A DNA stretch of 64,000 nucleotides from Macrostomum lignano (taxonomy: Eukaryota), in contig NIVC01001433.1 in the NCBI GenBank assembly GCA_002269645.1, positions 201,438 through 265,437 of the forward strand, given 5' to 3'. A program made the translations under genes and the position numbers. Below are positions 26,321 to 63,393 of this stretch, piece after piece; the first letter of the stretch is position 1, and each line of letters starts with the position of its first letter. The notes below the pieces were generated by a model. That model was not told the DNA's origin and searched no databases. It saw only the letters and a program-made list of their open reading frames with translations.

Positions 26321-26454
26321 ACACCAGCAACTAAACAAATTCCTGACCAACAACGAATGCATTTTTATTTTTTTAAGTATTTTAAAACCCTATGTTTAAA
26401 TTTCAAGCGTAAACCAATGCATGCGAAGATTGCTATTTTAACAAGCAATTGGTG

Positions 26455-29400
26455 ATGGAAAGTTTGGTAAAAGTGCGTCAGATTGAGCTGCCTAGCGACA
26501 CGGCAAACGCTGGCAGTTTCAAGTTTTTCATGAATCGGTACAAAACGCCTGTCGCCGGAAAAAATGGAAACAAAGATCAGCTGGATTCTGGCTTATTTTG
26601 GGTTAATGCACCTGACAGTGGAGGTGCAAATCAACTTGCACCATTGTATCGCTCATTGGAGTTCGAATCCTTGTTTTGCCAGATGTATAAAGGCGAAAAA
26701 ATGCCCTTAACAGTTGAACAAGCCCGGATTTTGCTAGCTGTGCCAATACACAAGCGATACGATTTTTGTGTTTCGAGTAATTTTCAATTGGCCCAACGCT
26801 TCCAAGTTGGTAGCATCGTGTCTGTTCGCGATCCCAGTTTTGTTGAGAAGCTAGGTTTGTACTCTCTTTTTGAGTCTCTGCAAGTACTTAAGGTTTCCTT
26901 TGCAATAGGAAAACCGGGTAATTTTTCGCTCAGAGTTTGAGTCATTCATTTCGAGGCACGAAATATTGGCCTTGGAGTTGTCTTATGATTCACAGCCATT
27001 ATGGCCGACCTCCAAGCTACAGACTACATGCCTGACGATTTAGAAAGTCAAAGAACCGCTGTACAGCCTGTGTGAGCGTGTGTTTGATTGCGTGCTTGCG
27101 TTAAGGATTGGTACGCTAGGTTGTGTGTGCTCATGAGTCAGCGGAGTGCTCGTCTACAATATAGCGTTCTTTTTACTCCAAATCATTTTGGTTGCCCTTG
27201 AAAAATCCGAATTTTTAACTGGCTTACATTAATTTGATTTTTTAGAGCCGATAAAATCGTTAAAGTGTCAAGTTCGGTTCAAAGGTGTTCTGCCTAGCAG
27301 GACAAAACCGAAAGACCCAGACGGTCTCTATTTTGGTTTTGTCAGCTGCGATCCAAAAGTAGATGACGGCCAGCCATTGATAATATCCGTGTTGGCTCTT
27401 TCTGACACTCAAAACCTGTTGAAAGTGCGCCCAGAGGAAGCTCGCGATCGCCGATTGATTCTAGCGGACGCTCGCTGGTTGGATCCGGTTCAAGATTGCC
27501 CAGCTGACCAGCTGTTTAACATTAACGATCGGGTAGTGCTGCAGTTGGACGCCAGACAGAATGAGTACAGGCGCGGCCTGATCAAATGGCTGGGTAGACT
27601 GGATGCAAACGGACCAAAACATCTGGCTGGCGTGGAGTTTGACCATCGAGTTCCCAATTCGTCATGTTGGTTGGGCAATCGTTGTCTGTTTGAAGGCAAA
27701 CCCGAGTGTTGTCTCATTGTTGAAGAGGCCCATTTGCAGCGAGAGGAAGACTTTGATCGTAAAATGGCAGGTTGGTTGAGTTGCCCTCGATTTTGCCTAG
27801 GATTGAATGACTTTGATGAATTTAGTATTTCGTAAGTTAAATCTATAGAATTGAGTTTCTGCTAGTATTTGTAGGATTAGTAGTGCTGTTTGTTAATGCT
27901 TTTTTGACAGACCAAAGCTGTACTGTATAAATGCTGTATTTGAGAATACAATGCTGTAGTTGATAATACAGAGCTGTACAAATGCTTTACTTAAGAATGA
28001 AATGCTGTAAAAATGCTGTACTTGATAATGCAAGGCTGTACAACTGCTGTACTGCTCATATTTTGTAGAGAGCCGCGCCAATGCTGGCCGAATTTATCAG
28101 CCGCCTGCTCAGCCTCCCAACTCATCTGATCCACGTCGCGACGAGGCGCAGGCACTGATGGAGAGTAAAGGCATTCGAATCGACTTGCATGTCAATTTAA
28201 CATTCCTGGACAAGGTCGGCATGGTTATGTGGTTCGGTTTCATTCCAAACCAAACAGATCTGGTTGTTGGCGTTGCTCTTGATGACAACGAAGGAGTTGA
28301 ACGCGGAGGCCACGGGTTCGTGCCTTCTAGCCAAGTGCGAGCCGTGCATCCAGATGTTCAGCCTGATCTGTGGTTCACCTTTCTGGATGCCATTGAGCCA
28401 GCGCAAAATGCCAATAGTCAGGCCGATCGTCCCAGAGGAGCCGAGGCTCTGCCTCACCAATTTGGCAGTGGCGACTTCGAAACCATTGCGGGTCCAACTG
28501 AGCCTCGAATTCGCCTAGAAGACTTGGACAATTTGGTCGGTCGCAATCGCGGTGTCCAGGGACATCACAACTCTTGTTATCTTGACTCAACGCTGTTCGC
28601 CATGTTTGCCACCGTTGACGCATTCGATGGCGTCCTAGAGCGGCCTGGTCAGGCTAAAGACATCGATAATTATGAAGAAATCAAGAATACTTTGCGCGAA
28701 GGTATTGTAAACTGTTTGAGAAGGTGAGCGACACTCCTACCCTGACCTACAGTTGTATATTGTATTTGTGTTTTCATATATTTCTACCACTGTCAAATGC
28801 TTTTAGAAACAAGTTTGTCAGCGCTGGACAAGTTCTGAAGCTGCGAAAATGTCTTAACGATCTCGACATCATTCCAGGAATGATGGGCGAAGAAAAAGGT
28901 GATTTAATATAAGACTAGTCTACTTTAATCCTCAAACTGGGTCTCTACTCTCCCAGATCCCTAGTCTGGGTCCCTACTGTTTACCAGATCTCTATAGGCT
29001 GGGTCCCTACTCCTTCTCAGATCCCTAGGCTGAGTCCCTACTCTCCCATATCCCCAGACTAAGTCCCTACTCTCCCAGATCCCTAGGCTGGGTCCCTACT
29101 CTCTCATCCATAGGGACTCAGGATTGAGGCTGAGTTCCTACTCTCCCAGATCCCTACGCTGGGTCCCTACTCCTCAGGATTGAGGCTGAGTTCCTACTCT
29201 CCCAGATCCCTAGGCTGAGTTCCTACGCTCCCAGATCCCTAGGCTGAGTCCCTACTCTCCCTGATCTCCTGGCTAAGTCCCTACTCTCCCAGATCCTCAG
29301 GCTAAGTCCCTACTCTCCCAGATCCCCAGTAAACATAAGATACCTTTTTATCCTCATTTCGTTTTCAACCCAACCCGCAGATCCCGAGGAGTTCATCAAC

Positions 29401-32073
29401 CTGCTGCTGGACCACGCGCTCCGTCATGAGCCGTTCATCAAACTGAGCACTGGGCAGAGCTCCCATGTGCTGCAGCTGTTTCTTGATCGGGCCGATTTGC
29501 CTTTCGAACAGCAGAAGCAGCAACAGCAGGTGTGTGATCTTTGAACGATAAGAAGATTATAAAAATCTCAGCGAATTCATTATTTTATGTGTATACCGGA
29601 TATGCAGCAAAAAACTTTCATATAAGTTTTTATTAATAATCTATTGGCTAAAGGACTAGCAATCACACTGATATTAAATAAGCCTTCTATATAATTGTTT
29701 TTTGACATAAGAAATTTGTGAAGCTAAAATAGCTGTCGCATTCCCTGATATCATCGCCTAGGGATCAGCTTTCCGGCTTTTGAGCAACTCCCTCATCAGC
29801 CATGGCATCTCAGCAACTCCCCATTGAGCCAATTGGCATCTCAGCAACTCCCCATTGAGCCATGGCATCTCAGCAACTCCCCATTGAGCCATGGCATCTC
29901 AGAAACTCCTCCTTGAGCCATGACATGACAGCAACGCTTGTATAATTTGCGTTCCCACAGCAGCAGCAGCAGCCGCATTCCACTGGTGCACGCGAGCACA
30001 TCGCGGACACTGAGACCCTGCTGCACCTGTCGCTAATCCAGAGCAACATCCAGTTTAGCGAGCCGCCGCAGTGCCTGATTCTGCAGATGCCTCGATCTGG
30101 GAAGTCATATAAGATGTTCCACCGCATCCTGCCAGTGCTGCAGTTGAACATCACCAACCTGCTGCCAGACACCGCCAGGGCCTGCAACATCTGCGGCAAC
30201 TTTGCCACTATCGAGTGCCATCAGTGCTTTCTCAAGCACGACTCCGGTCGCGATTACACCTATTGCGAACCTTGCTACAATACGTTTGCGGATCACAGAA
30301 AAGGGAAAACGCATGAGCCAATCAAGATTAAATATCCTAAGCATATCCTGGAGCAATATCAGAATCCTGGACAGGTGGTTGAAAGTCAGACTGTCATGGA
30401 TCTGCTGGCTGTTGTCTGTATTTGCACCAGTCACTACGTCTGCTTCTTGCGGGCCGAGCCCAACCACTGGCTGTTCTTCGATAGCATGGCCGATAGGGAG
30501 GGCGGTGAGTTCAGACTAGCTACTCGCCTCAGCATCCTCTCTCTCTCTCATCGTCTTGCATTCCATCCCCAATTCCCATTTCATCCCAATCCCCTTGCCA
30601 TCCCCATTCCATCCCAGTAGTAGGGGTAAGCAGGGCGACAGGGCGGAGATACGAGTAAGAGGCGGGGTAGTGCATTGGGATAGGAGGAGGCCGCCTATCT
30701 CTCAACATAAAGATGGTTAACACTGCAGAGATAGGCGGAGAGGCGGCCTATCTCTTTGTACTTGGGACGGTTAACACTGCAGAGATAGGAGGAGAGGCGG
30801 CCTATCTCTTTGTACTTGGGACGGTTAACACTGTAGAGATAGGAGGAGAGGCGGCCTATCTCTTTGTACTTGGAATGGTTAACACTGCATAGATAGGAGG
30901 AGAGGCGGCCTATCTCTTTGTACTTGGAATGGTTAACACTGTAGAGATAGGAGGAGAGGCGGCCTATCTCTTTGTACTTGGAATGGTTAACACTGCATAG
31001 ATAGGAGGAGAGGCGGCCTATCTCTTTGTACTTGGAATGGTTAACACTGTAGAGATAGGAGGAGAGGCGGCCTATCTCTTTGTACTTGGGACGGTTAACA
31101 CTGCATAGATAGGAGGGGAGGCGGCCTATCTCTTTGTACTGGGGACGGTTAACACTGTAGAGATAGGAGGAGAGGCGGCCTATCTCTTTGTACTTGGGAC
31201 GGTTAACACTGCATAGATAGGAGGAGAGGCGGCCTATCTCTTTGTACTTGGGACGGTTAACACTGCATAGATAGGAGGGGAGGCGGCCTATCTCTTTGTA
31301 CTTGGGACGGTTAACACTGCAGAGATAGGAGGAGAGGCAGCCTATCTCTTTGTACTTGGGACGGTTAACACTGCAGAGATAAGATGGAGTGGGTTAGTTG
31401 AATGAATGCTTAATGTTTCCAGGTACAATATATGGCGTCCAGTAATTGACCCAATAGACTTATCTATTATCAGTAAGTACACTTAGTAAAGCAACAAAGA
31501 CCAGCCAGTAAACACTGTACAGTGCATGCAAGAAAAAACAGCTAAATCCAGGCCAATCCAGGCCCCAGACAGTTACTCTGCAGCAGCCACCCTTTCTAAT
31601 TTGTCCAGGTAGTAAAATTGTTTTTTTGTGTGCAAAAGTTAGCCGCCTCCCCTATCTCTACAGTGTTGAGCATCCCCAGTACAAAGAGATAGGCCGCCTC
31701 TCCTCCTATCTCTGCAATGTTAACTGTCTCTATGTTGAGAGATAGGCCGCCTCCTCCTATCCCAATGCACTACCCCGCCTCCTATCTCCGCCGTGTTGGC
31801 CGTGTTCTGCTAACCCCTACTACTCATCCCCATCCCCATCCCTATGCCACCCCCATTTTAACCAGTTCATAAATGATTGAATTTCCAGGCTGCAACGATG
31901 GCTACAACATCCCGGAGGTGACCCGCGTCGATGGCCTTGAAGAGTGGCTTCGCGATCTTCAAGGCAAGACAGGCAACGCACCGCCTCCAGAACAGGGCAA
32001 CCGCCTGCTAGAGGATTGCTATCTGTGTTTCTACGGCAATCCAAGATCTGTGCCCTTCCCTAGCAGCTCCTGA
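26455..32073 (+). CDS. CYLD: CYLD K63/M1 deubiquitinase, copy 1 (intact, 849 aa)
   Basis: Exons 26455-26854, 27246-27770, 28069-28723, 28807-28898, 29381-29529, 29961-30504, 31889-32073 (2550 nt, no internal stops). Three CAP-Gly-like segments (best: GLIKWLGRL...LAGVEFD), Cys-box QGHHNSCYLDSTLFAMF, EEKDPEEFINLL, QMPRSGK, B-box cysteines, His/Asp boxes TSHYV and FFDSMADREG, GYNIPEV, LLEDCYLCFY. Confidence 0.95.
28925..29330. repeat. 29-bp minisatellite in CYLD intron 4
   Basis: Unit GACTAAGTCCCTACTCTCCCAGATCCCCA; homologous arrays at 38915-39556, 50660-51302 and 61715-61775. Confidence 0.9.
30616..31824. mobile_element. Non-autonomous Polinton/Maverick-like element (mini-Maverick) in CYLD copy 1 intron 6, 1209 bp
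   Basis: Begins AGTAGTAGGGGTAAGCAG and ends CTGCTAACCCCTACTACT; ~180-bp imperfect TIRs; 6-bp TSD CATCCC (30610-30615 and 31825-31830); internal 54-bp minisatellite (30713-31380) plus a ~260-bp unique core. Confidence 0.7.
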
Positions 32074-32602
32074 AGTAATATTGAAAACCATATACTTCGT
32101 TTTAAACGTTTTCGTCTTCTTTGAGATTCAACATCGTTTTTATTTATCAAATTTGCGATTCTCTCTTTTCTCAGTAAATAATATAATTTGTAAATATTTT
32201 TAATAAGAGGAATGCGAAAGCTATTAAAACCAATAACGGAGGATTAAACTCGGAGAAAAACGGTTCAACTTTCAAAACAAATAAGAGTCTACAATACGAG
32301 ACAGACGCTTGTATAGAACTTAACTTTAATAATAATTTTAAGTCTGTTGTTACTCCAGAATCGGCATAAAATACTTTTATATACTACTTGCAGTAGTAAA
32401 AAAAGTGGTAGCTTAAGCGCCGGAAGCATATAATGTATACACATACAACGTTTGTATTGGACCAAATTGATTAATTTTTAATTAAATGAGTTTTCTTTTC
32501 ATATATTTCTGGTTGGTGATCTGATGTGTACCATTTATTCCACTGTAATTGCATATTTCTACGCCGTCTCACCCAGTGATTAAACGATTTAATGCCATCA
32601 TC

Positions 32603-33540
32603 CAGGGGCGTCGCCACCGGGGGGACATGCTAATGCTTTGTCATGCCAATGCTCCACCCCATCTTGTGACCCGTTATGGAAATCAATAATTTTGCTTACG
32701 GGCTCCAAAGCATAGCGCCTGCGGCACCAAAATGAGTGCCTTCGGCGCCAAAATGAATGTCTGTGGCGCCAAAATGAATGTCTGTGGTGCCAAAATAAGT
32801 GACTGTGGCGCCAAAATGAGTGACTGTGGCGCCAAAATGAGTGACTGTGGTGCCAAAATAAGTGACTGTGGCGCCAAAATGAGTGACTGTGGCACCAAAA
32901 TGAGTGACTGTGGCACCATAATGAGTGACTGTGGCGCCAAAATGAGTGACTGTGGCACCAAAATGAGTGACTGTGGCGCCAAAATGAGTGACTGTGGCAC
33001 CAAAATGAGTGACTGTGGCGCCAAAATAAGTGACTGTGGCACCAAAATGAGTGACTGTGGCACCAAAATGAGTGACTGTGGCGCCAAAATGAGTGACTGT
33101 GGCGCCAAAATGAGTGACTGTGGCGCCAAAATGAGTGACTGTGGCGCAAAATAAGTGACTGTGGCGCAAAAATGAGTGACTGTGGCACCAAAATGAGTGA
33201 CTGTGGCGCCAAAATAAGTGACTGTGGCGCCAAAATGAGTGACTGTGGCACCAAAATGAGTGACTGTGGCGCCAAAATAAGTGACTGTGGCACCAAAATG
33301 AGTGACTGTGGCACCAAAATGAGTGACTGTGGCGCCAAAATAAGTGACTGTGGCACCAAAATGAGTGACTGTGGCGCCAAAATGAGTGACTACTGCGCCA
33401 GAATGAGTGACTGTGGCATCAAAATGAGCGCTGACAACACCAATTCTCAAAATAATGTACATGTAGTTATTTAGTCATGTACATGCAGAATTCTTGGCTT
33501 TGTCCCCTTCCCCACCATAAAATCCATGGCGACGCCTCCG
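32603..33540. mobile_element. hAT-like MITE carrying a 21-bp minisatellite (AAAATGAGTGACTGTGGCGCC)n
   Basis: TIR CAGGGGCGTCGCCA / TGGCGACGCCTCCG (12/14 match); 8-bp TSD CCATCATC / TCATCATC (7/8); subterminal GGGGGACA / TGTCCCC; array at 32725-33430. Confidence 0.7.
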
Positions 33541-34244
33541 TCATCATCAATCAATAAAAAATTATTCAATCGAATGTGATTCTCAATGAAAGTTTTAATT
33601 GTTTTGTCTCGATGTTTATTTTTTTCTTAATCCCTATTTATTATCATCATCACACCTGTAAATGTGTAGAATGTGTAAAATGCTTATCCAGATCGACCCC
33701 TGCTGTGCTGATGCAGAGGGTTTTCTTGCTTTTTTGCAAAAAAAATTAATTCATTCTGTACTAAAAACAAAACAAAGTGAAATCAACTTTTTAGACAAGC
33801 CTGTTATATTTTAAACGAGAAATGTACTCGTATCAGCAAACATTATGACTAAATATTATTGAAAACTGAATCGTAGCTTGACTTGTCTTGGCATGTTTTT
33901 ATTTATCCAGATTAGTACAAGCTGAACCTGGCGACCCACAACAGATGCAATTTTGTATTTTAAATGTTGGTAATTACTGTATTTCACTTCTAAATCCTTT
34001 CAAACTTCACAATGGCAATCCGGCCCGCTCAGCTCTCTTCTCCACAATCTCTCATCTCTGCTCTCGTCTTCTATTTCTCTCCTCTCCACTTTTTTATCTT
34101 TTTTCTCTTCTCTCCTTCTCTCTCTTGTCCTTCTTCTCCTCTCTTCTCCTTATATTCCCTTGCTTCTTCTTTCTCCCTCTGGCCCACAATCATGCGCTAA
34201 GTTATCTTGCATTGCATTCCCAATGAGTCTATTTTATTAATTCC

Positions 34245-35135
34245 CATCCTACTGATTCCCACCTCACAGCTCCCCATCCCACAGATTCCCATCCCAAAGA
34301 TTCCCATCCCACATCTCCCATCCCACAGCTCCCCATCCCACAGATTCCCATCCCAAAGATTCCCATCCCACATCTCCCATCCCACAGCTCCCTATCCCAC
34401 AGATTCCCATCCCACAGATCCCCATCCCACATCTCCCATCCCACAGATCCCCATCCCACATCTCCCATCCCACAGATCCCCATCCCCACAGCTCCCCATC
34501 CCACAGATTCCCATCCCACAGCCCCCCATCCCACAGATCCCCATCCCAACAGATTCCCATCCCACAGCCCCCCATCCCACAGATCCCCATCCCACAGATT
34601 CCCATCCCACAGCTCCCCATCCCACAGATTCCCATCCCACAGATTCCCATCTCACATCTCCCATCCCACAGCTCCCATCCCACAGATCCCCATCCCACAG
34701 ATTCCCATCCCACAGATCCCCATCCCACAGATTCCCATCCCACAGATCCCCATCTCACATCTCCCATCCCACAGCTCCCATCCCACAGATCCCCATCCCA
34801 CAGATTCCCATCCCACAGATCCCCATCCCACAGCTCCTATCCTACAGATCCCCATTCCACAGATTCCCATCCCACAGATCCCCATCCCACAGCTCCCATC
34901 CCACAGCTCCCATCCCACAGCTCCCAATCCACACAGCTCCCTATCCCACAGCTCCCCATCCCACAGATTCCCATCCCACAGATCCCCATCCCACAGATCC
35001 CCATCCCACAGCTCCCATCCCACAGCTCCCATCCCACAGCTCCCATCCCACAGCTCCCAATCCCCACAGCTCCCCATCCCACAGATCCCCACCCCACAGC
35101 TCCCATGCCACAGCTCCCCATTCCACAGCTCCCAC
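34245..35135. repeat. C-rich CCCCATCCCACAG satellite upstream of CYLD copy 2
   Basis: ~890-bp tandem array; source of the many spurious PIPQ/MGICG ORFs. Confidence 0.92.
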
Positions 35136-35804
35136 AATGCCAGTAGCTCAACTACTTCCTGTCCAACAAAAGTTGCATTTATTTTTCAAGTGAATTCAGT
35201 ACCTATAGATTCAACTTCAAGCGCAAACCAATGCATGCGAAGATTGCTTTTTTATCAAGCAATTGATGATGGAAAGTTTGGTAAAAAAGCGCCAGATTGA
35301 GCTGCCTAGCGACACAGAAAATCCCGGCAGTTTTAAGTGTTTCATAAATCGGTACAAAACGTCTGTCACCGTAAAAATTGGAAACAAAGATCAGATAGAA
35401 ACAAGGAAGCATCAGATGGATTCTGGCCTATTGTGGCTTATTGCACCTGACAGTGGAGGTGCAAATCAACTTGCACCATTGTATCGCTCATTGGAGTTCG
35501 AATCCTTGTATTGCCAGATGCATCCAGACGATAGAGTGGCTTTAACAGTTGAACAGGCCCGGATTTTGCTACCTGTGCCAGTACACAAGCGATTAAATTT
35601 TTGTCTTTCGAATAGTTTCCAAGTGGCCCAACGCTGCCAAGTTGGTAGCATCGTGTCTGTTCGCGATCCGAGTTGTTTTGAGAAGCAAGGTTTGTTTTTT
35701 ATCTCTGAGTCTGATCAAAGTTTCTTTTTTAATAGGCATACTGGTTCATTTTTTCGCTCAATTAGATTTCAAGTCAAAAGCATTCTAACTTCATTTAAGT
35801 CTGA

Positions 35805-36125
35805 GACAGCGCAGCTCAGCGGTAAACGCGTCGTACTAAATCGTACCACGACCCCTGGTTCGACTCCTTGCACGGGCACATTCAGAGCTTGTGTTCACTA
35901 AAATAGGACAGGGGTTTGTGCGATTTACAGCCATGGAGGCCAGCCCCAAAGGCACAGGGAGTGTACATGCCTGACGACTAGAAAGTCAGGGCCACTGTAC
36001 ACCCTGTGTGAGCGTGTGCCTGCCTGCGTAATGTATTGGCGTGCTTGTATGTGCTCAGGAGTGATCGGAATAGGCAGAATTGCCTCAGTGCTCGTCTACC
36101 ATAGAGGATAGTCTACTACTATTCT
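35805..36125 (+). mobile_element. tRNA-derived SINE in CYLD copy 2 intron 1
   Basis: A-box AGCTCAGCGGTAAA, B-box GGTTCGACTCC, body with a CCTGAC/GTCAGG hairpin, (CTA)n-like tail; head-less older relics at ~26985-27160 and ~59905-60080. Confidence 0.65.
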
Positions 36126-36162
36126 AGGCTACGATATCGGCTTCTTTTTAATTCTACATGTA

Positions 36163-37315
36163 CGAGGTGTATCCCAAAAGTAAGTTTCCCTCATATGTAA
36201 CTCGGCACCCAAGAGGCTCAGCTAAGTGCCACGTACGTTGTTGCTTTCTTTTTTGTCTATGGCCCAACCGCCCTAAACAAGTCGCTAAGTCCTAGCTTGT
36301 TCTCGAGCTGCATGGCTGCAACCCAAGCACACAACCTTTGCAACGATGGCCGCGTCCAGCTCGTTCTCTCGCTATGACGTTCGAAGCATCATCAAGTTTT
36401 CTGTGCTGTCTGGAAAATCGACACCAGAGATTCATCAAGAACTCGTGAGAGTCCTAGGAGAAGCTGCACCAACCATTCAAACGGTCTGGAAGTGGGTGCG
36501 AGAAATTCAAGAAGGACAGGACTGCATGGAGGACAAAGAGCGTTCTGGACGACCAAGGACTGCGACAACGGATTCCAATGCTGATCGCGTGATGGCTTCT
36601 GTGAGTGAAGACAACAGAAGGACATGCAGTGAGCTGGAGGAACTCCTCGGCATTCCCCATGGGACCCAGAGCTGAAGCGGCAGTCAGCGCAGTGGCTTCC
36701 GATAGGATCGGCGAGTCCCGAGAAGGTGCGACGCAAGCAAGGCTCATTGAAGGTGATGCACATCATTTTTTGACATTGACGGGATCATTCTGGACTGGCC
36801 CCTGTGCCTGTGGGTACCAAAGTAAATGCTGAGTACTATCGATGGGTGCTTCAAGAGAAACTGCGACCAGCGATAAGGAAAAAGCGGCCGGGCCTTCTGG
36901 AGAGAGGCGTCATATTCCATCACGAAAACGCCCCGGTGCATCGGGCCAGACGGGTTGAAGAGCTGCTCGGCTCATGGAGCTGGGAAATTCTCCGCCACCC
37001 GTGCTACTCGCCTGATTTGGCTCCGGCGGACTTCTATCTGTTCCCGAAGATGAAAGAGAGCCTTCGTGGCCAGCGTTTCGGATCTGAGGAGCAGGTGAAC
37101 AACAGCGCTTCATCAGCTCTCCGACATCTGGCGATCGCCGGCTGCAGGCCCGCCTTTGAAGCGTGGGTGCGTCGCTGGGAAAAGTGCGTTGAGCTTGGCG
37201 GCCGATTTGTGGAGTGACAAATACTTTAAGTTGTGGTTTGACAAAGTTTACGTTTTTTAAAACTAATTGCTCACTGTTGGCAGCTGACCGAAACTTACTT
37301 TTGGGATACACCTCT
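36163..37315 (+). mobile_element. mariner (Tc1/mariner, D34D) transposon, internally deleted, 1153 bp
   Basis: 26-bp TIR CGAGGTGTATCCCAAAAGTAAGTTTC / GAAACTTACTTTTGGGATACACCTCT with TA on both sides. Transposase has the HTH N-terminus (36346-36675, RSGRPR) and the C-terminus with HHENAPVH and YSPDLAPADFYLF; WVPHEL and TGDE motifs are deleted; frameshift near 36768. Confidence 0.93.
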
Positions 37316-47870: not shown

Positions 47871-47908
47871 TAGGCTACGATATCGGCTTCTTTTTAATTC
47901 TACATGTA

Positions 47909-49061
47909 CGAGGTGTATCCCAAAAGTAAGTTTCCCTCATATGTAACTCGGCACCCAAGAGGCTCAGCTAAGTGCCACGTACGTTGTTGCTTTCTTTTTT
48001 GTCTATGGCCCAACCGCCCTAAACAAGTCGCTAAGTCCTAGCTTGTTCTCGAGCTGCATGGCTGCAACCCAAGCACACAACCTTTGCAACGATGGCCGCG
48101 TCCAGCTCGTTCTCTCGCTATGACGTTCGAAGCATCATCAAGTTTTCTGTGCTGTCTGGAAAATCGACACCAGAGATTCATCAAGAACTCGTGAGAGTCC
48201 TAGGAGAAGCTGCACCAACCATTCAAACGGTCTGGAAGTGGGTGCGAGAAATTCAAGAAGGACAGGACTGCATGGAGGACAAAGAGCGTTCTGGACGACC
48301 AAGGACTGCGACAACGGATTCCAATGCTGATCGCGTGATGGCTTCTGTGAGTGAAGACAACAGAAGGACATGCAGTGAGCTGGAGGAACTCCTCGGCATT
48401 CCCCATGGGACCCAGAGCTGAAGCGGCAGTCAGCGCAGTGGCTTCCGATAGGATCGGCGAGTCCCGAGAAGGTGCGACGCAAGCAAGGCTCATTGAAGGT
48501 GATGCACATCATTTTTTGACATTGACGGGATCATTCTGGACTGGCCCCTGTGCCTGTGGGTACCAAAGTAAATGCTGAGTACTATCGATGGGTGCTTCAA
48601 GAGAAACTGCGACCAGCGATAAGGAAAAAGCGGCCGGGCCTTCTGGAGAGAGGCGTCATATTCCATCACGAAAACGCCCCGGTGCATCGGGCCAGACGGG
48701 TTGAAGAGCTGCTCGGCTCATGGAGCTGGGAAATTCTCCGCCACCCGTGCTACTCGCCTGATTTGGCTCCGGCGGACTTCTATCTGTTCCCGAAGATGAA
48801 AGAGAGCCTTCGTGGCCAGCGTTTCGGATCTGAGGAGCAGGTGAACAACAGCGCTTCATCAGCTCTCCGACATCTGGCGATCGCCGGCTGCAGGCCCGCC
48901 TTTGAAGCGTGGGTGCGTCGCTGGGAAAAGTGCGTTGAGCTTGGCGGCCGATTTGTGGAGTGACAAATACTTTAAGTTGTGGTTTGACAAAGTTTACGTT
49001 TTTTAAAACTAATTGCTCACTGTTGGCAGCTGACCGAAACTTACTTTTGGGATACACCTCT
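47909..49061 (+). mobile_element. mariner transposon, internally deleted (duplicate of 36163-37315)
   Basis: Identical TIRs, TA flanks, deletion and frameshift at offset 11746. Confidence 0.93.
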
Positions 49062-51764: not shown

Positions 51765-52920
51765 CTCATCAGCCATGGCATCTCAGCAACTCCTCCATTG
51801 AGCCAATTGGCATCTCAGCAACTCCCCATTGAGCCAATTGGCATCTCACCAACTCCCCATTGAGCCAATCGGCATCTCAGCAACTCCCCATTGAGCCAAT
51901 TAGCATCTCAGCAACTCCCCATTGAGCCAATTGGCATCTCAGCAACTCCCCATTGAGCCAATTGGCATCTTAGCAACTCCCATTGAGCCAATTGGTATCT
52001 CAGCAACTCCCCATTGAGCCAATTGGCATCTCAGCAACTCCCCATTGAGCCAATTGGCATCTCAGCAACTCCCCATTGAGCCAATTGGCATCTCAGCAAC
52101 TCCCCATTGAGCCAATTGGCATCTCAGCAACTCCCCATTGAGCCAATTGGCATCTCAGCAACTCCCCATTGAGCCAATTGGCATCTCAGCAACTCCCCAT
52201 TGAGCCAATTGGCATCTCAGCAACTCCCCATTGAGCCAATTGGCATCTCAGCAACTCCCCATTGAGCCAATTGGCATCTCAGCAACTCCCCATTGAGCCA
52301 ATTGGCATCTCAGCAACTCCCCATTGAGCCAATCGGCATCTCAGCAACTCCCCATTGAGCCAATTGGCATCTCAGCAACTCCTCCATTGAGCCAATTGGC
52401 ATCTCACCAACTCCCCATTGAGCCAATCGGCATCTCAGCAACTCCCCATTGAGCCAATTAGCATCTCAGCAACTCCCCATTGAGCCAATTGGCATCTCAG
52501 CAACTCCCCATTGAGCCAATTGGCATCTTAGCAACTCCCCATTGAGCCAATTGGCATCTCAGCAACTCCCCATTGAGCCAATTGGCATCTCAGCAACTCC
52601 CCATTGAGCCAATTGGCATCTCAGCAACTCCCCATTGAGCCAATTGGCATCTCAGCAACTCCCCATTGAGCCAATTGGCATCTCAGCAACTCCCCATTGA
52701 GCCAATTGGCATCTCAGCAACTCCCCATTGAGCCAATTGGCATCTCAGCAACTCCCCATTGAGCCAATTGGCATCTCAGCAACTCCCCATTGAGCCAATT
52801 GGCATCTCAGCAACTCCCCATTGAGCCAATTGGCATCTCAGCAACTCCCCATTGAGCCAATTGGCATCTCAGCAACTCCCCATTGAGCCAATTGACATCT
52901 CAGCAACTCCTCTTTGAGCC
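51765..52920. repeat. 31-bp minisatellite, CYLD copy 3 intron 5
   Basis: Same unit and similar length as 40020-41175. Confidence 0.95.
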
Positions 52921-53614
52921 ATGACATGACAGCAACGCTTGTATCATTTGCGTTCCCACAGCAGCAGCAGCAGCCGCATTCCACTGGTGCACTCGAGCAC
53001 ATCGCGGACACTGAGACCCTGCTGCACCTGTCGCTAATCCAGAGCAACATCCAGTTTAGCGAGCCGCCGCAGTGCCTGATTCTGCAGATGCCTCGATCTG
53101 GGAAGTCATATAAGATGTTCCACCGCATCCTGCCAGTGCTGCAGTTGAACATCACCAACCTGCTGCCGGACACCGCCAGGGCCTGCAACATCTGCGGCAA
53201 CTTTGCCACTATCGAGTGCCATCAGTGCTTTCTCAAGCACGACTCCGGCCGAGACTACACCTATTGCGAACCTTGCTACAATACGTTTGCGGATCACAGA
53301 AAAGGGAAAACGCATGAGCCAATCAAGATTAAATATCCTAAGCATATCCTGGAGCAATATCAGAATCCTGGACAGGTGGTTGAAAGTCAGACTGTCATGG
53401 ATCTGCTGGCTGTTGTCTGTATTTGCACCAGTCACTACGTCTGCTTCTTGCGGGCCGAGCCCAACCACTGGCTGTTCTTCGATAGCATGGCCGATAGGGA
53501 GGGCGGTGAGTTCAGACTAGCTACTCGCCTCAGCATCCTCTCTCTCTCATCGTCTTGCATTCCATCCCCAATTCCCATTTCATCCCCATCCCCTTGCCAT
53601 CCCCATTCCATCCC

Positions 53615-55207
53615 AGTAGTAGGGGTAAGCAGGGCGACAGGGCGGAGATACGAGTAAGAGGCGGGGTAGTAGTGCATTGGGATAGGAGGAGGCCGCCTAT
53701 CTCTCAACATAAAGATGGTTAACACTGCAGAGATAGGCGGAGAGGCGGCCTATCTCTTTGTACTTGGAATGGTTAACACTGCAGAGATAGGAGGAGAGGC
53801 AGCCTATCTCTTTGTACTTGGGACGGTTAACACTGTAGAGATAGGAGGAGAGGCAGCCTATCTCTTTGTACTTGGGACGGTTAACACTGTAGAGATAGGA
53901 GGAGAGGCGGCCTATCTCTTTGTACTTGGGACGGTTAACACTGTAGAGATAGGAGGAGAGGCGGCCTATCTCTTTGTACTTAATGGGACGGTTAACACTG
54001 CAGAGATAGGAGGAGAGGCAGCCTATCTCTTTGTACTTGGGACGGTTAACACTGTAGAGATAGGAGGAGAGGCGGCCTATCTCTTTGTACTTGGGACGGT
54101 TAACACTGCAGAGATAGGAGGAGAGGCGGCCTATCTCTTTGTACTTGGAATGGTTAACACTGCATAGATAGGAGGAGAGGCGGCCTATCTCTTTGTACTT
54201 GGAATGGTTAACACTGTAGAGATAGGAGGAGAGGCGGCCTATCTCTTTGTACTTGGGACGGTTAACACTGCAGAGATAGGAGGAGAGGCGGCCTATCTCT
54301 TTGTACTTGGAATGGTTAACACTGCAGAGATAGGAGGAGAGGCAGCCTATCTCTTTGTACTTGGGACGGTTAACACTGCAGAGATAGGAGGAGAGGCGGC
54401 CTATCTCTTTGTACTTGGAATGGTTAACACTGTAGAGATAGGAGGAGAGGCGGCCTATCTCTTTGTACTTGGGACGGTTAACACTGCATAGATAGGAGGG
54501 GAGGCGGCCTATCTCTTTGTACTGGGGACGGTTAACACTGTAGAGATAGGAGGAGAGGCGGCCTATCTCTTTGTACTTGGACGGTTAACACTGCATAGAT
54601 AGGAGGAGAGGCGGCCTATCTCTTTGTACTTGGGACGGTTAACACTGCATAGATAGGAGGGGAGGCGGCCTATCTCTTTGTACTTGGGACGGTTAACACT
54701 GCAGAGATAGGAGGAGAGGCAGCCTATCTCTTTGTACTTGGGACGGTTAACACTGCAGAGATAAGATGGAGTGGGTTAGTTGAATGAATGCTTAATGTTT
54801 CCAGGTACAATATATGGCGTCCAGTAATTGACCCAATAGACTTATCTATTATCAGTAAGTACACTTAGTAAAGCAACAAAGACCAGCCAGTAAACACTGT
54901 ACAGTGCATGCAAGAAAAAACAGCTAAATCCAGGCCAATCCAGGCCCCAGACAGTTACTCTGCAGCAGCCACCCTTTCTAATTTGTCCAGGTAGTAAAAT
55001 TGTTTTTTTGTGTGCAAAAGTTAGCCGCCTCCCCTATCTCTACAGTGTTGAGCATCCCCAGTACAAAGAGATAGGCCGCCTCTCCTCCTATCTCTGCAAT
55101 GTTAACTGTCTCTATGTTGAGAGATAGGCCGCCTCCTCCTATCCCAATGCACTACCCCGCCTCCTATCTCCGCCGTGTTGGCCTGTGTTCTGCTAACCCC
55201 TACTACT
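53615..55207. mobile_element. Mini-Maverick-like element in CYLD copy 3 intron 6, 1593 bp
   Basis: Same termini and CATCCC flanks; 54-bp array at 53715-54765. Confidence 0.7.
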
Positions 55208-55980
55208 CATCCCCATCCCCATCCCTATGCCACCCCCATTTTAACCAGTTCATAAATGATTGAATTTCCAGGCTGCAACGATGGCTACAACATCCCGGAG
55301 GTGACCGCGTCGATGGCCTTGAAGAGTGGCTTCGCGATCTTCAAGGCAAGACAGGCAACGCACCGCCTCCAGAACAGGGCAACCGCCTGCTAGAGGATTG
55401 CTATCTGTGTTTCTACGGCAATCCAAGATCTGTGCCCTTCCCTAGCAGCTCCTGAAGTAATATTGAAAACCATATACTTCATTTTAAACGTTTTCGTCTT
55501 CTTTGAGATTCAACATCGTTTTTATTTATCAAATTTGCGATTCTCTTTTCTCAGTAAATAATATAATTTGTAAATATTTTTAATAAGAGGAATGCGAAAG
55601 CTATTTAAACCAATAACGGAGGATTAAACTCGGAGAAAAACGGTTCAACTTTCAAAACAAATAAGAGTCTACAATACGAGACAGACGCTTGTATAGAACT
55701 TAACTTTAATAATAATTTTAAGTCTGTTGTTACTCCAGAATCGGCATAAAATACTTTTATATACTACTGCAGTAGTAAAAAAAGTGGTAGCTTAAGCGCC
55801 GGAAGCATATAATGTATACACATACAACGTTTGTATTGGACAAATTGATTTATTTTTAATTAAATGAGTTTTCTTTTCATATATTTCTGGTTGGTGATCT
55901 GATGTGTACCATTTATTCCACTGTAATTGCATATTTCTACGCCGTCTCACCCAGTGATTAAACGATTTAATGCCATCATC

Positions 55981-57168
55981 CAGGGGCGTCGCCACCGGGG
56001 GGACATGCTAATGCTTTGTCATGCCAATGCTCCACCCCATCTTGTGACCCGTTATGGAAATCAATAATTTTGCTTACGGGCTCCAAAGCATAGCGCCTGC
56101 GGCACCAAAATGAGTGCCTTCGGCGCCAAAATGAATGTCTGTGGCGCCAAAATGAATGTCTGTGGTGCCAAAATAAGTGACTGTGGCGCCAAAATGAGTG
56201 ACTGTGGCGCCAAAATGAGTGACTGTGGTGCCAAAATAAGTGACTGTGGCGCCAAAATGAGTGACTGCGGCACCAAAATGAGTGCCTTCGGCGCCAAAAT
56301 GAATGTCTGTGGCGCCAAAATGAGTGACTGTGGCGACAAAATGAGTGACTGTGGTGCCAAAATAAGTGACTGTGGCACCAAAATAAGTGACTGTGGCACC
56401 AAAATAAGTGACTGTGGCGCCAAAATGAATGACTGTGGCACCAAAATAAGTGACTGTGGCACCAAAATAAATGACTGTGGCGCCAAAATAAGTGACTGTG
56501 GCACCAAAATAAGTGACTGTGGCGCCAAATGAATGACTGTGGCACCAAAATAAGTGACTGTGGCACCAAAATAAATGACTGTGGCGCCAAAATAAGTGAC
56601 TGTGGCACCAAAATAAGTGACTGTGGCGCCAAAATGAATGACTGTGGCACCAAAATAAATGACTGTGCACCAAAATAAATGACTGTGGCGCCAAAATGAA
56701 TGACTGTGGCACCAAAATAAATGACTGTGGCGCCAAAATAAGTGACTGTGGCGCCAAAATGAATGACTGTGGCACCAAAATAAATGACTGTGGCGCCAAA
56801 ATAAGTGACTGTGGCGCCAAAATGAATGACTGTGGCACCAAAATAAATGACTGTGGCGCCAAAATAAGTGACTGTGGCACCAAAATAAGTGACTGTGGCG
56901 CCAAAATGAGCGACTGTGGCCACCAAAAATGAGTGACTGTGGCACAAAATGAGTGACTGTGGCACCAAAATGAGTGACTGTGGCACCAAAATGAGTGACG
57001 TGGTTGGCACCAAAATAAGTGACTACTGCGCCAGAATGAGTGACTGTGGCATCAAAATGAGCGCTGACAACACCAATTCTCAAAATAATGTACATGTAGG
57101 TATTTAGTTATGTACATGCAGAATTCTTGGCTTTGTCCCCCACCGTAAAATCCATGGCGACACCTCCG
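55981..57168. mobile_element. hAT-like MITE with a longer, chimeric 21-bp minisatellite
   Basis: CAGGGGCGTCGCC start and TGGCGACACCTCCG end; the array begins like the other copies and becomes divergent after ~56270. Confidence 0.65.
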
Positions 57169-57944
57169 TCATCGTCAATCAATAAAAAATTATTCAATCG
57201 AGTGTGATCCTTAATGAAAGTTTTAACTGTTTTGTCTCGATGTTTATTATTTTTTTAATCCCTATTTATCATCATCATCACACCTGTAAATGTGTAGAAC
57301 GGTTTCGCGTTTCCAAATGCTTATCCAGATCGACCCCCCGCTGTGCTGATGCAGAGGCTTTTCTTGCTTTTTTGCAAAAAAAATTCATTCTGTACTAAAA
57401 ACAAAACAAAGTGAAATCAACTTTTTAGAGAAGCCTGTTATATTTTAAACGAGAAATATACTCGTATCAGCAAACATTATGACAAAATATTATTGAAAAC
57501 TGAATCGTATCTTGACTTGTCTTGGCATGTTTTTATTTATCCAGATTAGTACAAGCTGAACCTGGCGACCCACAACTGATGCAATTTTGTATTTTAAATG
57601 TTGGTAATTACTGTATTTCACTTCTAAATCAAGTGTCATGTCCCATCTGTAGCTTGACCAGAGGGGTCGCTCCGGCCTGCAGAGCCTCTCTAACCGGCCC
57701 TCGGCTCCTTTCAAACTTCACAATGGCAATCCGGTCCGCTCAGCTCTCTTCTCTATAATCTCTCATCTCTGCTCTCGTCTCCCATTTCTTTCCTCTCCAC
57801 TTTTTAATATATTTTCTCTTCTCTCCTTCTCTCGTCCTTCTTCTCCTCTCTTCTCCTTTATTCCCTTGCTTCTTCTCTTTCCCTCTGGCCCGCAGTCATG
57901 CGCTAAGTTCTCTTGAATTGCAGTCCCAATGGGCCTATTTTAGT

Positions 57945-59297
57945 TATTCCCATCCCACAGCTCCCCTTTCCACAGCTCTCCAATCCCACAGCTCCCCATC
58001 TCACAGATCCCCACCCCACAGCTCTCCATCCCACAGCTCCCCATCCCACAGCTCTCTATCCTACAGCTCCCCATCTCACAGATCCCTTTCCACAGCTCTC
58101 CAATCCCACAGCTCCCCAACTCACAGATCCCCATCCCACAGCTCTCCATCCCACATCTCCCCATCTCACAGCTCCCCATCCCACAGCTCTCCATCCCACA
58201 GCTCCCCATCCCACAGCTCCCCTTTCCACAGCTCTCCAATCCCACAGCTCCCCAACTCACAGATCCCCATCCCACAGCTCCCCATCCCACATCTCCCCAT
58301 CCCACAGCTCCCCAACTCACAGATCCCCATCCCACAGCTCTCCATCCCACATCTCCCCATCTCACAGCTCCCCATCCCACAGCTCTCCATCCCACAGCTC
58401 CCCATCCCACAGCTCCCCTTTCCACAGCTCTCCAATCCCACAGCTCCCCAACTCACAGCTCCCCAACTCACAGATCCCCATCCCACATCTCCCCATCTCA
58501 CAGCTCCCCATCCCACAGCTCTCCATCCCACAGCTCCCCATTCCACTGATCCCCATCCCACAGCTCCCCTTTCCACAGCTCCCCATCCCACATCTCCCCA
58601 TGCCACAGATCCCCATCCCACATCTCCCCATGCCACAGATCCCCATGCCACAGCTCCCCATCCCACAGCTCCCCATCCCACAGATCCCCATCCCACACAG
58701 CTCCCATCCCACAGCTCTCCATTCCACAGATCCCCATCCCACATCTCCCCATGCCACAGATCCCCATCCCACATCTCCCCATCCCACAGCTCCCATCCCA
58801 CATCTCCCCATCCCACATCTCCCCATCCCACAGATCCCCATCCCACAGCTCCCCATCCCACAGCTCTCCATCCCACATCTCCCCATCCCACATCTCCCCA
58901 TGCCACAGATCCCCATCCCACATCTCCCCATCCCACAGCTCCCCATCCCACAGATCCCCATCCCACATCTCCCCATCCCACAGATCCCCATCCCACAGCT
59001 CCCCATCCCACAGCTCTCCATCCCACATCTCCCCATCCCACATCTCCCCATGCCACAGATCCCCATCCCACAGCTCCCCATCCGCTCCCCATCCCACAGC
59101 TCCCCATCCCACAGATCCCCATCCCACAGCTCCACATCCCACAGATCCCCATCCCACAGCTCCCCATCCCACAGCTCTCCATCCCACATCTCCCCATCCC
59201 ACATCTCCCCATGCCACAGATCCCCATCCCACAGATCCCCATCCCACAGCTCCACATCCCACAGCTCCCCATCCCACAGATCCCCATCCCACAGATT
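57945..59297. repeat. C-rich CCCCATCCCACAG satellite upstream of CYLD copy 4, ~1.35 kb
   Basis: Longest array; followed by an inverted unit GGGATGGGGATCTGTGGGAT (~59303-59322). Confidence 0.92.
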
Positions 59298-59354
59298 TCT
59301 ATGGGATGGGGATCTGTGGGATTTCTAGATTTCTATTTGAACAAGCAATTGGTG

Positions 59355-61683
59355 ATGGAAAGTTTGGTAAAAGTGCGCCAGATTGAGCTGCCTAGCGACA
59401 CAGAAAATCCCGGCAGTTTTAAGTGTTTCATGAATCGGTACAAAACGTCTGTCACCGTAAAAATTGGAAACAAAGATCCGATAGAAGCAAGGACACATCA
59501 GATGGATTCTGGCTTATTGTGGCTTATTGCACCTGACAGAGGAGGTGCAAATCAACTTGCACCATTGTGTCGCTCATTGGAGTTCGAATCCTTGTTTTGC
59601 CAGATGTATAAAGGCGAAAAAATACCTTTAACAGCTGAAGAAGCCCGGATTTTGCTAGCTGTGCCAATACACAAGCGATACGATTTTTGTGTTTCGAGTA
59701 ATTTTCAATTGGCCCAACGCTTCCAAGTTGGTAGCATCGTGTCTGTTCGCGATCCCAGTTTTGTTGAGAATCTAGGTTAGTTGGTGTCTCTGAGTCTCAA
59801 GTGCTTAAGGTTTCCTTTGCAATAGGAAAACCGGGTAATTTTTCGCTCAGAGTTTGAGTCATTCATTTCGAGGCACGAAATATTGGCTTTGGGGGTTGTC
59901 GTGTGATTCACAGCCATTATGGCCGACCTCCAAGCCACAGACTGTACATGCCTGACGATTTAGAAAGTCAAAGAACCGCTGTACAGCCTGTGTGAGCGTG
60001 TGTATGAGTGCGTGCTTGCGTTAAGGATTGGTACGCTAGTTTGTGTCTGCTCAGGAGTCAGCGGAGTGCTCGTCTACAATATAGCGTTCTTTTTTATTCG
60101 AAATCATTTTGGTTGCCCTTGAAAAATCCGATTTTTTAACTGGCTTACATTATTTGATTTTTTAGAGCCGATAAACTCGTTAAAGTGTGAAGTTCGGTTC
60201 AAAGGTGTTCTGCCTAGCTGGACAAAACCGAAAGACCCAGACGGTCTCTATTTTGGTTTTGTCAGCTGCGATCGCAAAGTAGACGATGGCCAGCCATTGA
60301 TAATATCCGTGTTGCCTGATGACAACACTCGACAACTGTTGAAGGTGCGCCCAGAAGAAGCTCGCGATCGCCGATTGATTCTAGCGGACGCTCGCTGGTT
60401 GGATCAGGTTCAAGATTGCCCAGCTGACCAGCTGTTTAACATTGACGATCGGGTAGTGCTGCAGTTGGACGCCAGACAGAATGAGTACAGGCGGGGCCTG
60501 ATCAAATGGCTGGGTAGACTGGATGCAAACGGACCAAAACATCTGGCTGGCGTGGAGTTTGACCATCGAGTTCCCAATTCGTCATGTTGGTTGGGCAATC
60601 GTCATATGTTTGAAGGCAAACCCGAGTGTTGTCTCATTGTTGAAGAGGCCCATTTGCAGCGAGAGAAAGACTTTGATCGTAGATTGGCAGGTTGGTTGAG
60701 TTGCCCTCGATTTTGCTTAGGATTGAATTACTTAGATTAATAAACCTAGTATCTCGTAAGTTGAATCTATAAAATTGAATTCTGCTAGTATTTAAAGGAT
60801 TAATGCTCTACTTGACAGGCCAAGGCTGTAAAAATGCTGCAATGTTCATATTTTGTAGAGAGCCGCCAAATGCTGGTCAGAGTTATCAGCCGCCTGCGCA
60901 GCCTCTCAACTCGTTTGATCCACGTCGCGACGAGGCGCAGGCACTGATGGAGAGTAAAGGCATTCGAATCGACTCGCATGTCAATTTAACATTCCTGGAC
61001 AAGGTCGGCATGGTTATGTGGTTCGGTTTCATTCCAAACCAAACAGATCTGGTTGTTGGCGTTGCTCTTGATGACAACGAAGGAGTTGAACGCGGAGGCC
61101 ACGGGTTCGTGCCTTCTAGCCAAGTGCGAGCCGTGCATCCAGATGTTCAGCCTGATCTGTGGTTCACCTTTCTGAGCCTGATTGAGCCAGTGCGAAATGC
61201 CAATAACCAGGCCGATCGTCCCAGAGGAGCCGAGGCTCTGCCTCACCAATTTGGCAGTGGTGACTTTGCAACCATTGCGGGTCCAACTGAGCCTCGAATT
61301 CGCCTAGAAGACTTGGACAATTGTCGGTCGCAATCGCGGTGTCCAGGGACATCACAACTCTTGTTATCTGGACTCAACGCTATTCGCCATGTTTGCCACC
61401 GTGGACGCATTCGATGGCGTCCTAGAGCGGCCTGGTCAGGCTAAAGACATCGATAATTATGAGGAAATCAAGAATACTTTGCGCGAAGGTATTGTAAACT
61501 GTTTGAGAAGGTGAGCGACACCTACCCTGACCTACAATTTTATATTGAATTTGTGTTCTCATATATTTCTACCACTGTCAAATGCTTTTAGAAATAAGTT
61601 TGTCAGCGCTAGGCAAGTTCTGAAGCTGCGAAAATGTCTTAACGATCTCGACATCATTCCAGGAATGATGGGCGAAGAAAAAG
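59355..61683 (+). pseudogene. CYLD: CYLD copy 4 (exons 1-4), frameshifted in exon 3 and interrupted by a Maverick in intron 4
   Basis: Exons 59355-59775, 60166-60690 (CAP-Gly intact), 60859-61510, 61592-61683. A 1-nt loss at ~60866 and a 2-nt loss at ~61320 (before the Cys-box) relative to copy 1. Intron 4 homology stops at 61801. Confidence 0.8.
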
Positions 61684-62505: not shown

Positions 62506-62511
62506 TTTTTC

Positions 62512-63380: not shown

Positions 63381-63393
63381 AAAAAATTTAAAC

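Follow-up and report, generated by a model that had tools for sequence, protein, structure and literature searches.

We analysed a 64,000-nucleotide stretch of the genome of the flatworm Macrostomum lignano (hereafter, the window), which occupies the terminal 64 kb of the 265,437-bp contig NIVC01001433.1 in assembly GCA_002269645.1 (contig positions 201438-265437, so that window and contig share their right end) and carries a tandem array of genes related to the deubiquitinase CYLD. Stop-to-stop open reading frames (ORFs), tblastn searches and reading of the splice sites revealed four CYLD-like copies, here called A to D, arranged head to tail on the plus strand, and a self-comparison of the window showed a minisatellite-dense unit that recurs about every 11.7 kb. 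An initial annotation had proposed four such copies in tandem at 26455-61683, and its coordinates proved exact: copy A has its ATG at 26455, and exon 4 of copy D ends with base 61683. The two peptides that it had quoted are also both present, in a copy A frame at 28029-28724 and a copy B frame at 37954-38709. Coding sequence makes up around 26% of this interval and minisatellites around 36%. The exon model of copy A was built by tblastn with PAA55907.1 and splice-site reading, using M. lignano proteins as guides; PAA55907.1 and PAA92486.1 (both from M. lignano and both of 852 amino acids) were the best protein matches, with 90% identity over their full length. GT and AG dinucleotides were found at every retained splice site in all copies. 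The copies and their principal parts are as follows.

26455-32073, plus strand: CYLD-like copy A, the only copy in the window with an open frame (exon model); seven exons at 26455-26854, 27246-27770, 28069-28723, 28807-28898, 29381-29529, 29961-30504 and 31889-32073
27524-27727, plus strand: CAP-Gly domain of copy A (residues 227-294, exon 2; best Pfam CAP_GLY stretch)
28524-32046, plus strand: USP catalytic domain, residues 461-841 of copy A (exons 3-7 and the introns between them; from the alignment with 2VHF)
35269-43817, plus strand: CYLD-like copy B, a pseudogene with a premature stop and an 84-nt loss, all splice sites kept; exons at 35269-35689, 37391-37831, 38054-38708, 38790-38881, 39607-39755, 41217-41760 and 43633-43817
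47015-55455, plus strand: CYLD-like copy C, a near-identical duplicate of B with the same stop and 84-nt loss; exons at 47015-47435, 49137-49577, 49800-50454, 50536-50627, 51353-51501, 52962-53505 and 55272-55455
59355-61683, plus strand: CYLD-like copy D, exons 1-4 only, at 59355-59775, 60166-60690, 60859-61510 and 61592-61683

The spliced coding sequence of copy A is 2550 nt long and consists of 849 codons and a single terminal stop. Copies B and C share a premature stop in exon 2, where codon 209 has changed from CGA to TGA, and their exon 2 is 84 nt shorter than that of A (3 + 81 nt), which removes the core of the CAP-Gly domain; the 81-nt loss corresponds to 27580-27660 of copy A and lies within its best CAP-Gly match. 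Past the premature stop, B reads on without interruption for about 620 codons, and neither B nor C has lost any of its twelve splice sites. Exon 7 of C has an additional 1-nt deletion. In copy D, deletions of 1 nt and 2 nt shift the frame between them in exon 3, and intron 4 tracks those of A and B up to 61801, 27 nt before the expected start of exon 5, where foreign sequence begins. A 21-nt indel in exon 1 further distinguishes the copies. As assembled, the array therefore comprises an intact gene, a pseudogene present twice and an interrupted copy. At least three distinct 5' types (A, B/C and D) stand next to each other, and L002, a second contig introduced below, independently contains an A-like copy followed by a D-like one, which supports a tandem expansion. 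The earlier description of at least four diverging paralogues with a shared exon structure needs amending: B and C are 99.9% identical and only A is open, and the seven-exon structure is common to A, B and C, while D has exons 1-4 only.

The family identity of the array genes is solid. Residues 461-841 of copy A aligned with the USP domain of human CYLD (2VHF) over the whole domain (E = 1.8e-79), the alignment taking in the Cys and His boxes, the Asp motif and the zinc-binding B-box-like insertion. The motifs NSCYLDS, TSHYV and FFDSMAD are identical or near-identical between the two, and in the B-box-like insertion, at about residues 680-735 of copy A, the paired Cys-x2-Cys and His residues match those of 2VHF; which of the USP residues are catalytic we take from established knowledge of human CYLD. 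Every PDB match of copy A was a CYLD (human 2VHF, zebrafish 3WXE-G), and the nearest matches outside the flatworms are named CYLD or CYLD-like (Pycnogonum litorale, CYLD; Liolophura sinensis, CYLD-like). In Pfam, copy A scored 30.7 bits against UCH (cut-off 23.9) and 36.4 bits, above the cut-off, against CAP_GLY. Human CYLD has three CAP-Gly domains, and a CYLD deubiquitinase is expected to cleave Lys63- and Met1-linked ubiquitin chains. Copy A resembles it in the USP domain from end to end, in the Cys, His and Asp motifs, in the Cys and His ligands of the B-box-like insertion and in having CAP-Gly upstream, and differs from it in that Pfam finds two CAP-Gly stretches only, a third not being detected. 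Matches to CYLD of other species cover 23-59% of the query, much of the N-terminal part being unmatched outside Macrostomum, and this N-terminal region of copy A is near-neutral in its evolution. With CAP-Gly, the Cys, His and Asp elements of the USP domain and the B-box-like insertion in place, copy A is predicted to retain everything required of a working CYLD.

The array lies just downstream of a DnaJ gene (23472-24482), which adjoins the CYLD locus on its left in each of the three genome copies discussed below, and both annotated CYLD genes of M. lignano are found just downstream of the same DnaJ gene on two sister contigs, NIVC01002689.1 (L001) and NIVC01000051.1 (L002), with one call on each. 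L001 contains a single CYLD copy (L1) followed by unrelated genes, whereas L002 contains an A-like copy (L2a) and then an orthologue of D (L2b) that carries the same foreign insertion, so that the number of CYLD copies is four in the window, one in L001 and at least two in L002. The upstream flank of the window is 97% identical to those of both sister loci. Around 85% of the M. lignano genome is present as three paralogous copies with a divergence of about 2.2% in single-nucleotide polymorphisms and very large indel differences (PMC10733133), and the window, L001 and L002 are evidently the three copies of this region. The A/D duplication and the insertion in D would then be older than the separation of the three genome copies, and the B-C duplication, with a divergence of 0.1%, would be much younger, or possibly an expansion made in assembly.

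No public gene call lies over copy A, and none over the D-type copy of L002 (22502-24833). In L001, four tandem Ty3/gypsy-like retroelement units of about 4.4 kb occupy intron 4 (12483-30862), three of which have an open ORF of 1411 amino acids with gag, aspartyl protease, reverse transcriptase, RNase H and integrase domains, and the public gene model there is in consequence 25.6 kb long. UniRef entry A0A1I8JFU5, a 424-amino acid model from an older M. lignano assembly, is 96-100% identical per exon to copy D and ends in exon 3; the name given to it, 'HNHc domain-containing protein', finds no support in its sequence, which reads as an N-terminal fragment of CYLD.

The divergence between copies A and B falls along the gene. 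Their identity is 79% in the 300 nt upstream, 88.5% in exon 1, 90.0% in exon 2, 94.5% in exon 3 and 96.7% in exon 4, rising to 98.7% in exon 5, 99.1% in exon 6, 99.3% in intron 6, 100% in exon 7 and 99.8% in the 600 nt after the stop codon; more generally, the 5' halves of A, B and D differ by 6-12%. Synonymous divergence (dS) between A and B falls fourfold, being 0.129 for exons 1-2 and 0.032 for exons 5-7; for exons 1, 2 and 3 the non-synonymous differences number 36, 31.5 and 21.5, respectively, with one each in exon 4 and in exons 5-7, where the ratio of non-synonymous to synonymous divergence (omega) is 0.05. The clustering of amino-acid changes towards the 5' end that the initial annotation had pointed out is thus genuine. 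Its companion claim, that the exons of the Cys box, B-box and His box are almost invariant, applies to A and B; D is without the B-box and His-box exons, and in the 3' half the introns are as conserved as the exons. Because 3' non-coding sequence is conserved to the same degree as coding sequence, the invariance within the array reflects recent common ancestry or conversion, and that of the catalytic exons would owe much to recent homogenisation and not only to purifying selection. Purifying selection on the USP part is nevertheless real, and is visible when copy A is compared with the intact sister-contig copies, which in exons 5-7 differ from it at a dS of 0.10 with an omega of 0.04-0.09; the introns flanking the USP exons are 93-95% identical between contigs. 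The contrast of a variable N-terminus with invariant catalytic exons is a real pattern, then, which within the array is not a signature of selection.

A patchwork of identity was found when the copies were compared in 200-nt windows. A and D are 98% identical over 26634-26833 and 91% and 93% identical on either side; A and L1 are 98-100% identical over 27825-28393 and 90% identical in exon 1; and B and D drop from 96% identity in the first window to 88% in the second. This patchwork points to gene conversion among paralogues, and dN/dS values given per exon for such mosaic sequence are to be read with caution. In exons 1-2, omega was 0.60-1.07 in all pairs, including those between intact copies (A-L1, 0.63; A-L2a, 0.67), and binomial tests on these exons, which have low power, never rejected neutrality in any pair, showed no excess of replacements and gave no one-sided p below 0.2. 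The most extreme pair was B-D in exon 1, with 30.5 replacement and 4.5 silent differences (one-sided p = 0.20). Exons 1-2 are thus indistinguishable from neutral in every pair, intact-intact pairs included. Constraint is significant in exons 3-4 (omega 0.2-0.5) and in exons 5-7.

The initial annotation had read the array as a birth-and-death cluster of the kind known from immune genes, in which several functional paralogues would have N-terminal targeting halves (exon 1, CAP-Gly and pre-USP linker) diversifying under positive selection and a catalytic core kept constant by purifying selection. In so far as duplicates and decaying copies are present, birth and death does apply, trivially. Some of the sequence evidence is also what such a cluster would show: there are at least four 5' types over the three loci (A, B/C, D/L2b and L1/L2a), differing at a dS of 0.06-0.13, which is several times deeper than the 1-2% between genome copies; omega, at 0.04-0.09 in the USP exons, reaches 0.6-1.1 in exons 1-2; replacements outnumber silent changes in exon 1 of B and D; the orthologue of D is open through exons 1-4 in L002; and exons 3-4 of B, with an omega of 0.39 (p = 0.01), have been constrained for most of their history. 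No comparison rises above neutrality, however, the B-D pair included; the 3' invariance extends to introns, spacer and silent sites; and the mosaic identity and homogenised 3' half do not fit paralogues evolving independently. With B and C dead and D interrupted, one copy of four in the window is open and the other three carry lesions, and each sister contig has one called CYLD gene, with none called over copy A. Our searches of the literature on CYLD in Macrostomum or in flatworms, a link to immunity included, found nothing relevant. Essentially neutral N-terminal ratios in dead copies, which the initial annotation had itself named as evidence that would tell against its reading, are what exons 1-2 exhibit. 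We therefore consider an immune-type cluster decidedly unlikely; the adaptive reading is unsupported, and the data are too few to decide it. Highly improbable, in our estimate, is a copy-number-variable array in which at least four N-terminal types are shuffled by conversion onto one catalytic module, several of them being expressed and selected for different partners. If true, such an array would be a counterpart, in an invertebrate, of diversifying gene clusters for innate immunity or regeneration signalling.

The assembly itself has to be weighed as a source of the array, since GCA_002269645.1 contains wrongly collapsed or expanded blocks (PMC10733133). The array, or the B/C pair alone, might have been misjoined or over-expanded at the end of the contig, the true locus having one or two copies. 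The window is terminal on its contig, which breaks off within a repeated element, such errors affect many blocks of the assembly (PMC10733133), about half of the differences between B and C are small indels, and the differences from the sister contig are dominated by indels near the contig end. Copies A, B and D, on the other hand, differ by 6-12% in their 5' halves and are set apart by the 21-nt indel, the 84-nt loss and the mariner-like and virus-like insertions described below, so that they are not one locus, and L002 independently holds two tandem copies in the same order. B and C form 11.7-kb units (period 11,746 nt) that are 99.9% identical, with 99.0% identity in exon 1 and 100% in exons 2-6; if a 21-nt minisatellite array is set aside, 12 substitutions (in about 11 kb), 11 small indels and a minisatellite step of 108 nt separate the two. 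Four of the substitutions form a cluster in exon 1, and this cluster, together with the two minisatellite units of the 108-nt step, also separates B from C. Their divergence of 0.1% is far below the roughly 2% expected of misjoined genome copies (PMC10733133). On this balance, we regard an artefact as unlikely.

The smaller lesions are another matter. The orthologue of D in L002 is 98.5% identical to it and open through exons 1-4, with a full-length exon 3 in which both deletions are absent. Further along, window positions 61930-64000 and L002 positions 24999-27078 are likewise 98.5% identical and differ by 16 small indels as against 12 substitutions; within the two genes of the inserted element there, the count is 14 frameshifting indels against two substitutions. 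Differences so rich in indels suggest uncorrected long-read errors and not decay. The stop and the 84-nt loss of B and C were treated as real because they are a substitution and a large deletion, both of which are present in two copies.

That B and C might be alive was also considered. They could yield shortened products, for example an N-terminal fragment of 208 residues or a protein consisting of the USP part only, made from a downstream start or by alternative splicing. The frame of B is open through exons 3-7 after the stop, the twelve splice sites are intact in both copies and the omega of 0.05 between A and B in exons 5-7 would suit such products. Their 3' half is 99-100% identical to that of A, introns included, so that its openness needs no selection; C has its extra frameshift in exon 7; and no B-type protein was found among 5.8 billion sequences. 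A living B or C is, on these grounds, extremely improbable.

Minisatellites, identified with Tandem Repeats Finder (TRF), recur at corresponding positions of the units. None has a strand assigned.

34240-35133: 15-nt minisatellite, directly upstream of exon 1 of copy B
26005-26317, 45985-46879 and 57949-59294: 15-nt arrays before copies A, C and D, respectively
32719-33428, 44463-45172 and 56097-57058: 21-nt minisatellite in the spacers between copies
30715-31389, 41972-43133 and 53717-54771: 54-nt minisatellite in intron 6

Further arrays were found by TRF in intron 4 (29 nt) and intron 5 (29/31 nt). The identity between the window and L001 falls from 97% to 92% across the 15-nt array at 26005-26317; the 108-nt step between B and C amounts to two units of the 54-nt array; and a self-alignment of 30679-45172 with 42422-56805 is 98.1% identical, the near-identity of successive units stopping inside the last 21-nt array. 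Minisatellite arrays are likely to be exchange points, or substrates, for unequal exchange. They also yield long ORFs at 34201-35297, 45946-47043 and 57913-59780 on both strands, which we rejected as genes because they are read-throughs of the 15-nt minisatellite. Such read-through frames are rich in Pro, Ser and His and extend to as many as 620 amino acids, and would fool an ORF caller.

Taken together, tandem duplication, gene conversion and weak constraint on the N-terminus probably explain the array, as an ordinary event in a repeat-rich neopolyploid genome. The array downstream of the DnaJ gene would owe its origin and its continuing rearrangement to gene conversion and unequal exchange, the latter probably between the minisatellite-rich spacers and introns that flank each copy. 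Copy B would have acquired its nonsense codon and lost the CAP-Gly core before the 11.7-kb unit was duplicated to give C, and a virus-like element would have entered intron 4 of D before the three genome copies separated. The 3' half (exons 5-7, their introns and the spacer) appears to have been homogenised recently, and the catalytic exons would look invariant for that reason; the 5' third appears to be almost unconstrained and a patchwork of conversion tracts, and differences would be concentrated there because weak constraint acts together with conversion. The anatomy of the copies, their lesions, the gradient of identity, its mosaic character and the unequal copy numbers of the sister loci are shown by the sequences themselves, whereas the mechanism of exchange, the succession of events and a functional copy A are inferred.

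Several points weigh against this account. The selection analysis rests on pairwise Nei-Gojobori estimates, on conversion mosaics and on a few dozen differences, and so has little power, and positive selection on a few sites is possible. The deletions of 1-2 nt in exon 7 of C and exon 3 of D are doubtful and may be errors of assembly, and the B/C pair could be an expansion of the kind against which PMC10733133 warns. Copy B, open for about 620 codons after its stop and with its splice sites intact, would have to be a young pseudogene or one kept in shape by conversion. Finally, copy A, which is predicted to be functional, is absent from the public gene calls.

Two kinds of inserted element interrupt the array; the initial annotation had spoken of two kinds of Maverick-type element. 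Within the coordinates that it gave, the mariner-like remnants of B and C are the only insertions.

36161-37317, plus strand: remnant of a mariner-like DNA transposon, copy B, intron 1 (1157 nt, terminal inverted repeats, Pfam domains)
47907-49063, plus strand: second mariner-like remnant, copy C, intron 1 (letter-for-letter the same as 36161-37317)
61802-64000, minus strand: terminal part of a virus-like element that interrupts intron 4 of copy D and runs to the contig end; the same insertion is present in L002
61849-62114, no strand: 83-nt subterminal tandem repeat of the virus-like element (TRF)
62545-63376, minus strand: gene homologous to a 279-amino acid ORF of L002 (tblastn with neighbours on L003 and L004)
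63388-64000, minus strand: C-terminal part of a double-jelly-roll capsid-like gene, cut by the contig end

The first of these is a 1157-nt mariner-like remnant with 33-nt terminal inverted repeats that are 91% complementary. Separate frame segments matched HTH_48 (E = 3.2e-7, above the cut-off) and DDE_3 (E = 8.8e-6, just below it), and the transposase frame is broken by at least one frameshift. The insertion is absent from A, from D and from the sister contigs, in which intron 1 is around 390 nt long. Its HTH_48 and DDE_3 domains and 33-nt inverted repeats liken it to Mariner/Tc1 elements of the Mos1 type, from which it differs in being a 1157-nt remnant with a broken frame. It may be what was mistaken for the second Maverick-type element.

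The second insertion was followed mainly in L002, where the corresponding stretch contains two open minus-strand ORFs. One of these (L002:26464-27582, 372 amino acids) matched the Pfam family PF21738, DJR-like_dom, with E = 5.8e-6 and 26.2 bits, just under the cut-off of 27. Eight homologues of 253-438 amino acids were found on short metagenomic contigs, all with a precomputed DJR-like_dom match, and there the capsid-like gene belongs to tightly packed gene sets in which it stands beside a conserved gene of about 280 amino acids. Two such contigs, from environmental or run assemblies, L003 (ERZ27299534 k119_392657) and L004 (SRR8670882_414355), have compact gene sets with capsid-like relatives that are 44-79% identical, and one neighbour on contigs of this type gave a very weak match to Adeno_PX (E = 0.04). 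The gene of about 280 amino acids, for which a minor capsid role might be proposed, had no match in Pfam, PHROGs or PDB. Compared with the open L002 copies, the window's version of this gene (62545-63376) has six frameshifting indels, two substitutions and no stop made by substitution, and its part of the capsid-like gene has eight frameshifting indels and no substitution; these frameshifts are probably errors of assembly. Pfam searches with the window's own fragments of the element gave nothing usable. A profile of the capsid-like family found no PDB match at E values up to 1 and no match in PHROGs, and an AlphaFold2 model of a homologue, computed from eight aligned sequences, was too poor to assign a fold (pLDDT 48, pTM 0.43). 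Scans of IMG/VR and JGI metagenome contigs for related loci confirmed none, and an exon query through the downstream gene for the far side of the L002 insertion gave no match. The contig of the window breaks inside this element, as assemblies typically do in repeats.

Polintons/Mavericks are defined by a protein-primed DNA polymerase B and a retrovirus-like integrase (PMC5499653). Neither a polymerase nor an rve integrase was found in the visible parts of the element (2.2 kb in the window and 3.8 kb in L002). A protein with a DJR-like domain beside a conserved gene of about 280 amino acids, in a compact, virus-like order, resembles these elements, from which the insertion differs in that its visible part contains neither polymerase B nor integrase and in a Pfam score just under the cut-off. 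Polintons/Mavericks are also expected to have long terminal inverted repeats and a target-site duplication; only one end of the element in D is in view, and it carries the 83-nt tandem repeat. Its gene content is consistent with the capsid module of a Polinton/Maverick or of a polinton-like element. There is one candidate virus-like element here, not two.

Upstream of the array the window contains ordinary host genes.

3-11679, minus strand: NBAS-like gene (Nbas_N)
12652-15631, minus strand: DEAD-box helicase of the eIF4A type, with minisatellites in its introns
23472-24482, plus strand: the DnaJ gene

Window positions 13472-34482 are base-for-base identical to a 21-kb locus of NIVC01001433.1 that was found with the DnaJ protein. 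Within the region of the NBAS-like gene, a run of plus-strand frames at 1985-3638 contains a Cys/His-rich motif and looks transposase-like by eye; these frames had no Pfam match at E values up to 0.1. Between the helicase and DnaJ genes, positions 16000-23400 have a G+C content of 30-34%, compared with 45-50% elsewhere, and almost no long frames. We rejected this low-G+C stretch (16-23 kb) as an inserted element, as it is 97% conserved in L001 from 17717 onward. Rfam and tRNA scans of the window gave no matches.

For annotation, the array matters in that the number of CYLD copies differs between the genome copies (one, at least two and four) in a widely used regeneration model. Most of the extra copies are damaged, the one that reads as intact is uncalled, and one public model is stretched to 25.6 kb by an array of retroelements, so that knockdown or quantification of CYLD in M. 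lignano needs knowledge of which copies exist. The locus is also a clean, small example of gene conversion mimicking the signature of selection for a conserved core and a diversifying N-terminus. It is useful for annotation and not as a discovery, and raises no new question about CYLD biology or virus-like elements.

Comparison with known systems places the array among cases of concerted evolution. CYLD is not strictly single-copy elsewhere, a second copy (CYLDL) being present in non-mammalian vertebrates and lost in mammals (PMC5381560). The vertebrate CYLD/CYLDL pair is dispersed and ancient, whereas the copies described here lie in tandem, are young (dS 0.002-0.13), convert one another and for the most part carry damage. 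They are closer to the arrays that result from unequal crossing-over and gene conversion. Such concerted evolution is known in many multigene families, and its hallmarks recur here: head-to-tail units, repeat-rich spacers, differences in copy number, mosaicism and one homogenised segment. The M. lignano array differs from those families in being small and in having, within the block covered by the window, a single intact member.

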